DNA of 62,017 nucleotides, the filler included, from Choristocarpus tenellus KU-1152 (lineage: Eukaryota > Protista > Phaeophyceae): assembly GCA_964200185.2 (NCBI GenBank). It is 10 parts of 10 records of this genome, joined end to end, with 100 filler letters (N's around TTAATTAATTAA, not from the genome) between each part and the next. Parts side by side here need not be neighbours in the genome. Positions count along the whole stretch, not along the records: positions 40,882 to 59,320 come from CAXNAD020000552.1; 9 more parts are not named here. One strand, given 5' to 3'. The position numbers and the translations under genes were made by a program. This document shows positions 48,101 to 51,100 of the stretch, piece by piece (position 1 is the stretch's first letter; each line of letters begins with the position of its first letter). The notes under the pieces are model-generated. The model saw only the letters and a list, made by a program, of their open reading frames with translations. It made no database searches and was not told the DNA's origin.

Positions 48101-51100
48101 CATCTTTTTTAGATACAATTTTGTATCTTGTAGAGAGGCAGTCGAAGTGTGAACAATATGTGTAGCATTGTATTCAAATGTACTTGACAACCAAGTTGCT
48201 TTAAAACTCACTTTTTCCACCAGTCTATCTCTGTGGCTGAATTGTTATTTTCTTCTTAAGAATTAATTTCTATACTACTTGCTTTTCTACCTCTTCATGC
48301 CCAGTATTACTTAAAAACGCAAGTTCGTTCGTTTTCACAGTTGCTCATGATTTCATATAGTCGCAGGTTCAGAGTTGTACTTGACGCGCTTTGTTGTCAT
48401 GTTTTGAGGAACTTTGTTGATTTGCGAAGATGAGATACAACTCTCACAGTTGTATTCTCTGGTGTCACATTATGTCATTACTCTGGAAATCATTCAGTCG
48501 GGTACCATCACCACCTCGGAGGCTGGACACTGCATCAAGACAATGAAGTTCAGTGTAAGCCCAGTTGTACGTGTGGCTGTGGAGCCCAAGAACTCTTCTG
48601 ACTTGCCCAAGCTTGTTGAGGGCATGAAGCGTCTTTCCAAGTCAGACCCAATGGTTCTCTGTTATACTGAGGAATCTGGCGAACATATCATTGCTGGATG
48701 TGGTGAGGTAAGTGCAAACATCACATAAATTTAATGTCTTTTGTCAACTTCTCAGCGGAGATGAAGTGTATTACTTTTTGGTATCCTTACTTTTTAAGCT
48801 CTGTGTAAATATTTTGCTGATATCACTCACTGGTTGGACTCCCATGTTTGCAGAATGATACCAATATCATGTTTTAGTATATTTTTTACTAATTGTTACA
48901 TTTTTTGCCTGAAATGCCAGCCCGTACTTCCTAAGGAACAAAATAAAAGGACAGAGCGAAGTCCGATGACCTTAGGTGTTGACGCTAGGCGAGAATAAAC
49001 CAGCGGGCATTGGTGGAACTCGAGGGTTAATAACTCTCTCCAGGGCAGTAACATGAGGTTTTTGCTAAAATGTAATGCCTCTGTGCCTGCCTGCTCTCGA
49101 GATCCCTTTGCGCGTGTAGAGTGCTGTTCCGACATGTCATCTTGTACACAGATGCGTTAATCCACGCTTTAGTAGTGCCGTATTACCACTTGAATCCCAC
49201 CACAGTCTTGTGATTATCCTAGGGGCCTCCAAAAGAGAGGCCTTGCAGATTATCGATATGGACAAAGGTAAAGGCATTTGAGGAATGTGTGTAGAGGTTA
49301 CTGTGTGCGGGATTAGCATGAACAGTGCGTACGTACATTATATAGTAATTGTTTTTAACATAAATTAAATCATGATACCAACCTGCATCCTTCCATTCAT
49401 AGTCATCTTTTAGTGTGTGTTTTTTCAATATAACAGCTGTTTTTAAGGTGAGATTTTGGTTAAAGTGAGGTGGAAGTTGCTCTATTTATAAGGCTTCCTT
49501 TTAAGGAACGGTGAAAATCTTTATCAGCAATGAATGCACCAAAAATGTAGGATTACTTTGTGGATCATGGTAGGGCATGTTGTCCCTTCAGTCTTGATAT
49601 TTTTTCTTGACACTGAATGTCAATCCCATCTCTTTCATTGTTTCTTATTTTCTGTGAAAGCTTCACTTAGAGATTTGCCTTAAGGATCTCCAGGAGGACT
49701 TCATGGGCACAGAGGTGAAAATCTCTGATCCTGTCGTCTCATACCGTGAGACTGTCTCTGCTGAATCTAGCCAGCAGTGTCTATCAAAATCTCCAAACAA
49801 GCACAACCGTCTCTATCTTTCTGCAAGCCCGCTTGAGAGTGGTGTCCCTGAAGATGTTGAAGAGGGCAGGCTTAACCCCCGCGATGATGCCAAGGTAAGA
49901 AGATATGGAGTACTTATCACGGGCTGAATATTTAATGTTCAAATATTCTCTTGATGTCATTTGAAGTTTGACAGTGAGTTGCATGTGATGTGTTAGGTAG
50001 CAAAGGATTTATCATTTCACGATTTTCTGTTCAATTTATTAATAGTGGAGTACGTATGAACAATTATTTTCTTTTTTGCTAATTTTGCTGATGAATAATT
50101 ACTTGGCCAAGCAACTTGCAATTTCCACCCTACTGGTTTCAGTTTTCATGGAGCTGTCCCTTTACATTGGTCATTTGTAATACAGACCCGTGCACGCTAC
50201 CTAGCTGATACACACGGATGGGATGTGAGTGAGGCGCGTAAAATCTGGGCTTTTGGACCGGAAGGAACAGGAACCAACATCTTCGTCGATGTGACCAAGG
50301 GTGTAAACTACCTCAATGAAATCAAGGAGTCTGTTGTGGGAGGTTTCAACTGGGCTATGAATGAGGGTCCCATGACTGAGGAGAAGGTGTGAGAGACTAT
50401 CTAGTAAAAATCATCTCTGGGTTATGCTTGGTGCTTGCTTTAGATGTAACATGTGTTTATATCCAATTGAGTTAAAAGTGTAATAGAAGTGGAGTCAAAT
50501 TTTTGTCGTCTACCTGATAAATGTTCAATGTTTTGTTTCTTATTCAAAACAATTCAAGTCAGCAGCATGAAGAGTGATTTACTCCCAAAGTTTCTCTTAT
50601 TTGAACTACCGCTAGGTACGTGGCGTGAGGTTCAACTTGCTTGATGTGGTACTGCACGCAGATGCTATCCACCGTGGTATGGGTCAGATTATGCCTACCT
50701 CCCGGCGTGTAGTTTACGCTTCAATGCTCACTGCGTCACCAATTCTACTGGAGCCAGTGTACCTCTGTGATATCCAGTGCCCACAGGTAAAGTACATTGT
50801 TCTTCAATGATTTGTCAATTTCTTCTAGAAACACTCCAAAAATTTTATAGGGTGGTTTTGGTACAATATAAAAGTAAATATCTTGTTTTCACATGTACTG
50901 TCTCCAAATATCTTTTTGTGTATGTTTCAATAAAAGTTTTTTATATTTATCATTTTTTATGTTGGATTTAGACTAGTGATCATGTTTCCGAAATTGAACT
51001 GTGATTCAGTTGTCTTGTTTTTGTTACAATCTGAGTGTTGATATATATTTTGTTAAATTGATGCCAGTTCGTACTTCCTGAGGAACAAAATAAAAGGGCA

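Follow-up and report, generated by a model that had tools for sequence, protein, structure and literature searches.

The eEF2 gene of Choristocarpus tenellus KU-1152 (Phaeophyceae) carries, in two of its introns, related stretches that look like a small guide RNA with a pocket complementary to the rRNA beside the sarcin-ricin loop. This raises the questions of which kind of RNA the two stretches encode, what the pocket would recognize, and whether residence in eEF2 has a meaning of its own. Positions below refer to the window, that is, the whole stretch of 62,017 nucleotides (filler included) that was analyzed, and all features lie on its + strand.

Two paralogues in the introns of one eEF2 gene

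The host is an intron-rich eEF2 gene at about 42465-52509, inside the piece 40882-59320. Its exon translations are unmistakably eEF2, and the exon products, when searched separately, had matches in close relatives, to EFG_III, EFG_IV and related domains. Two GT..AG introns are of concern here: intron A (48708..49660, 953 nt), whose flanking exons translate to eEF2, and intron B (50787..51814, 1028 nt). Contigs of the RNA-like kind in runs X2 and X4 contain a splice joint that skips the 953 nt of intron A, and after 50787 a loose end in run X2 runs on into the letters of the exon following intron B. The contigs of run X4, which comes from a related organism, covered only exons when placed on the locus.

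Two paralogues of one RNA element sit in these introns, copy 1 at 48915..49123 in intron A and copy 2 at 51062..51277 in intron B (the ends are predicted), as the preliminary description had stated. A repeat search returned one strong internal duplicate (48914-49030 versus 51061-51177), and blastn between the two introns gave a single homologous block, 48856-49173 versus 51002-51326, with 67% identity overall. Identity is uneven along the element: about 90% over hairpin 1 and the H box, about 62% over hairpin 2 and about 54% over the next 50 nt, and the rest of the two introns outside the block is at the background of 30%. A composite pattern made of the pocket, the stem edges and AGA matched twice in the whole window, at the two copies, where none was expected (100 shuffles). 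Also, a covariance model of hairpin 1 scored 115 bits for each copy and at most 11.5 bits elsewhere in the piece 40882-59320. The element had initially been delimited as 77 nt (48921-48997). The sequence of that segment is as described, but the conserved RNA is about 210 nt long and comprises two hairpins; the initial description had overlooked hairpin 2 and the AGA that stands in for ACA.

Two hairpins, an H box and an AGA 3' box

RNAalifold on both copies gave hairpin 1, an 11-nt hinge, a long hairpin 2 and a tail, with a column-shuffle z of -7.8 for the consensus fold. In copy 1, the lower stem of hairpin 1 is formed by 48915-21 and 48984-91, (U)GCCAGC / GCU(A)GGC(G). The 5' strand of pocket 1 (CCGUACUU, 48922..48929) contains the guide core CGUACU (48923-48928), which is invariant in copy 2, and the 3' strand (UGUUGAC, 48977..48983) contains the guide core GUUGA (48978-48982); U48929 and U48977 were taken as a U.U closing pair in defining these cores. 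Between the two strands lies a 7-bp upper stem, CCUAAGG / CCUUAGG (48930-36 / 48970-76), and the whole of the upper stem and apical part spans 48930..48976, the apical part being nearly invariant between the copies. The H box follows at 48992..48997 and reads AGAAUA, which fits ANANNA. Hairpin 1 of copy 2 (region 51061-51146) has the same layout and spacing, with pocket cores CGUACU at 51070-75, read as TTCGTACT on the 5' side and extended to UUCGUACU, and GUUGA at 51125-29 (GTTGA in the DNA), and an H box AGAUAA at 51139-51144, which fits ANANNA as well. The distance from the top of the pocket to the H box is 14 nt in both copies (48978 to 48992 in copy 1). Both the canonical spacing and the invariance of the pocket strands CGTACT and GTTGA, noticed at the outset, were thus found again, the strands flanking the 7-bp upper stem in each copy.

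All differences between the copies in hairpin 1 preserve the structure. In the upper stem, an A:U pair of copy 1 is replaced in a compensatory way by G:C in copy 2; in the same direction, C:G gives way to U.G at the top of the lower stem, and A:U to G.U in the apical stem; and the other changes are confined to loops or to a bulge. The apical loop AGAGCGAA, which contains AGAG, is invariant, and the loop of hairpin 2 varies between the copies. Conservation spans the whole of hairpin 1, the pocket included, so that what looks like selection on the guide could be an effect of gene conversion.

Hairpin 2 of copy 1 (49003..49115) stands on a lower stem of 6-7 bp (49003-09 / 49109-15), in which three pairs are changed on both sides between the copies. 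Above this stem lie an internal loop, partly self-paired, that is a candidate pocket 2 (49010-18 / 49100-06), and a long upper stem with a 15-nt bulge loop on its 5' side carrying the invariant AACUCUCUC. Of the 61 pairs in the consensus fold, none is broken between the copies, and both partners differ in 10, of which 9 belong to hairpin 2. The column-shuffle z was -5.1 for hairpin 1 and -8.0 for hairpin 2, and none of 300 shuffles attained the observed energy. Since the sequence identity of hairpin 2 is near neutral, its z is good evidence of selection on structure, and the preservation of this structure through many compensatory changes indicates that hairpin 2 works as RNA. Its retention for structure only points to a role in the assembly and stability of the RNP. 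Two other folds were tried and rejected: a short hairpin 2 ending at ACA 49048-50 (AGA in copy 2), for which no consistent stems form, and a third structured domain downstream (49124-49173), which is weak (z -1.2 to -2.7).

The box that follows hairpin 2 is unusual. AGA is the only box-like trinucleotide common to both copies after this hairpin; it lies at 49118..49120 in copy 1, 16 nt from the top of pocket 2, and at 51272-51274 in copy 2, in each case 2 nt past the stem, and both tails start with G-N-AGA-G. No ACA box shared by the copies was found after hairpin 2, and copy 1 has no ACA there. Copy 2 has an ACA (51264-66) that sits within the stem, and the aligned letters of copy 1 are GCG (CACACG versus UGCGCG). 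The 3' box of the H/ACA family is thus not present here as ACA.

The H box itself opens with AGA, so that this triplet follows both hairpins, and identity falls from 90% to about 62% past the H box. These two features would suit a mature RNA consisting of hairpin 1 and its 3' AGA, with hairpin 2 processed away. Single-hairpin H/AGA RNAs are known, and AGA is a 3' box variant in trypanosomatids (PMC3542256; PMC2613932). As in the trypanosomatid and Euglena guides, AGA replaces ACA after a guide hairpin in the eEF2 element; those guides, however, are single hairpins of about 70 nt arranged in clusters, whereas the eEF2 element has two hairpins and resides in spliceosomal introns. Moreover, the strong preservation of hairpin 2 (z = -8.0, with its many compensatory changes) argues against its being discarded. 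Guides of the single-hairpin AGA type come from Euglenozoa, a group not known to have such intron-rich genes. We therefore consider processing down to a single hairpin improbable, and retain a two-hairpin RNA.

A predicted rRNA substrate beside the sarcin-ricin loop

By H/ACA geometry, the substrate of copy 1 would be 5'-UCAAC-[U N]-AGUACG-3', with UCAAC-U-N placed immediately 5' of AGUACGAGAGGAAC in LSU rRNA. Copy 2 lengthens the 3' half to AGUACGAG, adding one U:A and one U.G pair: two C-to-U changes carry the complementarity into the next two bases of the loop, AG. The preliminary description had deduced 5'-UCAAC-NN-AGUACG(AG)-3' from the pocket, and in many eukaryotic LSU rRNAs this is the sequence of the 5' strand of helix 95 where it enters the sarcin-ricin loop. 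The predicted target U would correspond to about position 2652 of E. coli.

The target was sought by an exact scan for TCAAC-NN-AGTACGAGAGGAAC in IMG/VR and in the JGI metagenomes, and hence in the rDNA of other eukaryotes, not of the host. One IMG/VR contig matched, the first 130 nt of which are eukaryotic LSU rRNA (Rfam LSU_rRNA_eukarya), and at least 118 eukaryotic LSU loci with the motif were found in the JGI metagenomes. Among the 119 motif variants listed, NN was UU in 80, UC in 20, CU in 9, CA in 4 and something else in 6. As UU and UC make up 100 of these 119, a U stands at the target position in about 84%; the other 19 do not have it. The CU variants look like land plants to us, and the CA variants of gut metagenomes may be Blastocystis. 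Helix 95 stem sequence varies among lineages, and some motif variants have a C at the target base.

Whether a better site exists elsewhere in rRNA was examined in 22 near-complete metagenomic rDNA loci that extend 3 kb or more upstream of the site; the SSU is part of several. Pairing at the helix 95 site covers 6+5 bp with copy 1 (11 bp) or 8+5 bp with copy 2 (13 bp), with no or one G.U. Among the 22 loci, 17 carry U at the target position; in these it is the only site paired without any G.U, and none elsewhere pairs so well, so that the better target that would have spoken against the initial proposal was not found in them; the other 5 loci are without that U. Alternative sites in the 22 loci reached at most about 10 bp, with one to six G.U, and did not recur in conserved rRNA. 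The experimentally defined minimum for guide pairing is 8 bp with both sides engaged (PMC6049503), and the pairing of pocket 1 with the metagenomic rDNA motif (5+6 and 5+8 bp) exceeds it. By our own rough figure, about 1500 U positions in rRNA divided by 4^11 would give such a match to about 1 in 1000 random 11-nt pockets, so that the match is unlikely to be accidental; a match that is no accident would in turn require UCAAC-UN-AGUACG in the host rRNA.

We favor with moderate confidence the reading of the element as an H/ACA-type snoRNA encoded in introns, the 5' hairpin of which guides the pseudouridylation of a U at the boundary between helix 95 and the sarcin-ricin loop. The pocket matches perfectly the LSU stretch just 5' of the loop in its widespread variant, and it probably directs a lineage-specific pseudouridine there. 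By analogy with the rest of the family, the spliced intron would be debranched and trimmed back to the RNP assembled on the two hairpins and boxes. The 5' hairpin would be the working guide, in which GUUGA would pair with LSU 5'-UCAAC-3' and CGUACU (in copy 2, the extended form given above) with 5'-AGUACG(AG)-3'. [quoted passage not shown] This base would lie where the stem of helix 95 joins the sarcin-ricin loop, 2 nt 5' of AGUACG. The 3' hairpin would serve RNP assembly and stability, possibly with an accessory contact through its invariant bulge loop. We infer the mature ends, the protein partners, the presence of UCAAC-U in the host 28S and the actual formation of the pseudouridine. A new pseudouridine site adjoining the sarcin-ricin loop is plausible from the sequence. 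Neither yeast nor human is known to have a pseudouridine at this position, and the papers retrieved on rRNA modification do not mention one at the predicted base.

A genuine H/ACA-type RNA could also act on another substrate (an snRNA, another non-coding RNA or an mRNA), serve as a chaperone that modifies nothing, or be an orphan. The host 28S is assumed to carry the motif but may have a different helix 95 stem or no U at the site, helix 95 stems differ between lineages, and 19 of the 119 listed variants do not begin NN with U, all of which leaves room for another partner. The AGAG of the invariant apical loop resembles ugAG, the Cajal-body (CAB) box that scaRNAs have in the terminal loops of both hairpins. 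Pocket 2, for its part, is not the same in the two copies, and no rRNA match was found for it. On the other side stand a match of 11-13 bp with exactly two intervening nucleotides, at a widespread and conserved rRNA site, which a random pocket would rarely produce, and the lack of any comparable site elsewhere in the 22 rDNA loci. The conserved 5' regions of U2, U4, U5 and U6 are not known to offer a canonical match either. Another substrate, or none, is thus possible but rather unlikely, and guidance at helix 95 remains the reading that we prefer.

Two further pairings were considered and rejected. Pocket 2 is not retained as a guide, since it differs between the copies and gave no recurrent rRNA match. 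The pairing of the AACUCUCUC loop with AGAGAGUU in LSU domain I, seen in 11 of the 22 loci, is an 8-mer and no better than chance.

Expression, relatives and the link with eEF2

Run X2 is RNA-like, with exon depths in the thousands, spliced joints and introns at about 11-14. In this run, mean depth reaches 93.6 on the contig of intron A, about 8x that of three other intron contigs (11-14), and no excess was seen for copy 2, the contig of intron B being at 11.2. The depth of intron A fits a stable RNA made from copy 1 and is a hint of it; contigs do not show the ends of an RNA, and the depth could equally come from more frequent retention of intron A.

The eEF2 loci of three relatives were recovered from Logan assemblies, with about 82% DNA identity in exons and 96-99% identity in the exon-encoded peptide (in the peptide comparison, P0012 was matched over 79% of the query). 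One locus, L003, covers most of the gene, from the exons of the GTPase domain to the EFG_C exon. At both positions the relatives have short introns of about 190-370 nt, and searches of the recovered parts of the three loci by blastn and with the hairpin 1 covariance model did not detect the element. A search in protein space with a spurious ORF overlapping the RNA gave no orthologue candidates. As the recovered parts of eEF2 of the relatives are without the element, its residence in this gene would be recent or lineage-specific. In Rfam, no match reached the gathering score, and at E up to 10 there was only noise, at 17 bits or less.

The missing Rfam match, the missing canonical ACA box, the lack of an orthologue in the eEF2 introns of relatives and the indirect nature of the expression evidence could all be accounted for if the element were no snoRNA but, for example, an intronic repeat that has been duplicated, or a regulatory structure in the eEF2 pre-mRNA with a chance likeness to an H/ACA hairpin. 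In that case, the hairpin-hinge-hairpin-tail architecture, the ANANNA in the hinge, the spacings of 14 and 16 nt, the structure-preserving substitutions and a pocket perfectly antisense to rRNA would each be a coincidence, and we regard such an origin as very improbable. The element is a real feature and in all likelihood a snoRNA, probably an expressed one.

Compared with the box H/ACA guides of eukaryotes (yeast snR81 and snR5, human SNORA families), the eEF2 element is alike in its hairpin-hinge-hairpin-tail layout with an ANANNA H box, in its bipartite pocket 14 nt from the box with two substrate bases predicted to be unpaired, in its intronic residence in a translation-related host, and in having paralogues in different introns of one host. 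It differs in the shared 3' box, AGA and not ACA, in its length of about 210 nt and its extended 3' hairpin, in its unconserved 3' pocket and in the lack of a match to any Rfam H/ACA family.

Highly expressed translation genes are the usual hosts of snoRNAs, and this general habit would most simply explain the link with eEF2, with no need of a new principle of regulation. The preliminary description had gone further and proposed that eEF2 expression is coupled in this way to the docking site of eEF2 on the ribosome. The idea found no support, since the recovered parts of eEF2 of the three relatives are without the element and translation genes commonly host snoRNAs. Also, human EEF2 hosts an unrelated RNA, SNORD37, a box C/D guide targeting 28S A3697 (PMC3766210). 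An AGA-terminated two-hairpin guide of a pseudouridine at helix 95 and the sarcin-ricin loop that is hosted twice in eEF2 so that its dosage tracks eEF2 transcription seems improbable to us. Helix 95 itself is a known substrate of snoRNAs, as in mammals it carries the guided 2'-O-methyl Gm4618 (SNORD91; PMC12288042). The present element is like SNORD37 in being hosted by eEF2 and would be like SNORD91 in guiding a modification of helix 95. Nevertheless, both are C/D methylation guides, unrelated to it in sequence and mechanism, and SNORD37 is not aimed at the sarcin-ricin loop.

Other H/ACA RNAs act in ribosome assembly, such as snR30/U17, or have a dual role, such as snR37, which has been linked to helix 95 via Rbp95 (PMC13015370). 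The eEF2 element differs from snR30 in that the m1/m2 motifs are absent; it is like these RNAs in that the single-stranded loop of its 3' hairpin could contact rRNA.

The element belongs to an ordinary class of genes, and two of its traits are of modest interest: the probable new pseudouridine site adjoining the sarcin-ricin loop and the AGA 3' box on a two-hairpin RNA. If the preferred reading is true, a pseudouridine would lie next to the sarcin-ricin loop, among the most conserved and functionally critical elements of rRNA, and a double-hairpin H/ACA RNA with an AGA 3' box would exist outside Euglenozoa. Both would bear on the variability of rRNA modification maps and of box requirements among protists.

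Conserved parts of the two hairpins

The two paralogous H/ACA-type snoRNA copies found in eEF2 introns are near-invariant in the apical part of hairpin 1, the predicted guide hairpin (48937–48969 in copy 1 and 51084–51116 in copy 2), which includes an 8-nt terminal loop, AGAGCGAA. Variation is usually tolerated in the apical loops of H/ACA RNAs. The AGAG of this loop looks similar to the Cajal-body box ugAG, and gene conversion is a possible alternative cause of the near-invariance of the apex.

In hairpin 2, the 3′ hairpin, a 15-nt bulge loop carries the invariant AACUCUCUC (49025–49033 in copy 1; 51173–51181 in copy 2). 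Its 8-nt complement, AGAGAGUU, was present in LSU domain I of 11 of the 22 near-complete metagenomic rDNA loci scanned, about 2.5–3.5 kb upstream of the sarcin-ricin loop, and this complementarity was statistically no better than chance.

Intron spacing and a dispersed repeat

Judging from their aligned positions, the predicted 3′ ends of the copies each lie exactly 537 nt before the 3′ splice site of their own intron (49123 and 49660 for copy 1; 51277 and 51814 for copy 2). The sequences separating the copies from these splice sites showed 30% identity at zero offset, which is background only. The matching distance is either a coincidence or an unexplained spacing constraint. Also, two dispersed copies of a repeat, each about 115 nt long and about 85% identical to the other, lie at 44958–45073, within an upstream eEF2 intron, and at 56690–56798, outside the gene. 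Rfam returned no match for this repeat, which may derive from a transposon, as a small remnant, or represent a further non-coding RNA.

Sequencing runs and metagenomic LSU contigs

The contigs of two sequencing runs, X2 and X4, were compared with the window over positions 48600–51400. Neither run has a stated library type, but both have the character of RNA: spliced joints are present, and exons reach depths in the thousands. In X4, the principal eEF2 exon contig shows 18 differences from the window in 101 bases and therefore derives from another species. The same run also contains contigs of low depth that match the window exactly, suggesting carry-over among samples of one study.

Four metagenomic eukaryotic LSU loci (L049, named in its record as human gut metagenome, L095, L102, and L121) carry UCAAC-CA-AGUACG, in which the predicted target base is not U. 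They may be Blastocystis, in which case at least one stramenopile lineage would be unable to use the guide for pseudouridylation. Finally, L004, an IMG/VR "viral" contig, begins with eukaryotic LSU rRNA (nt 1–130) that stops just past the sarcin-ricin loop, and continues as AT-rich coding sequence (nt 131–3711) unlike the rRNA part in character. This contig probably represents an assembly chimera, or else an element linked to rDNA.
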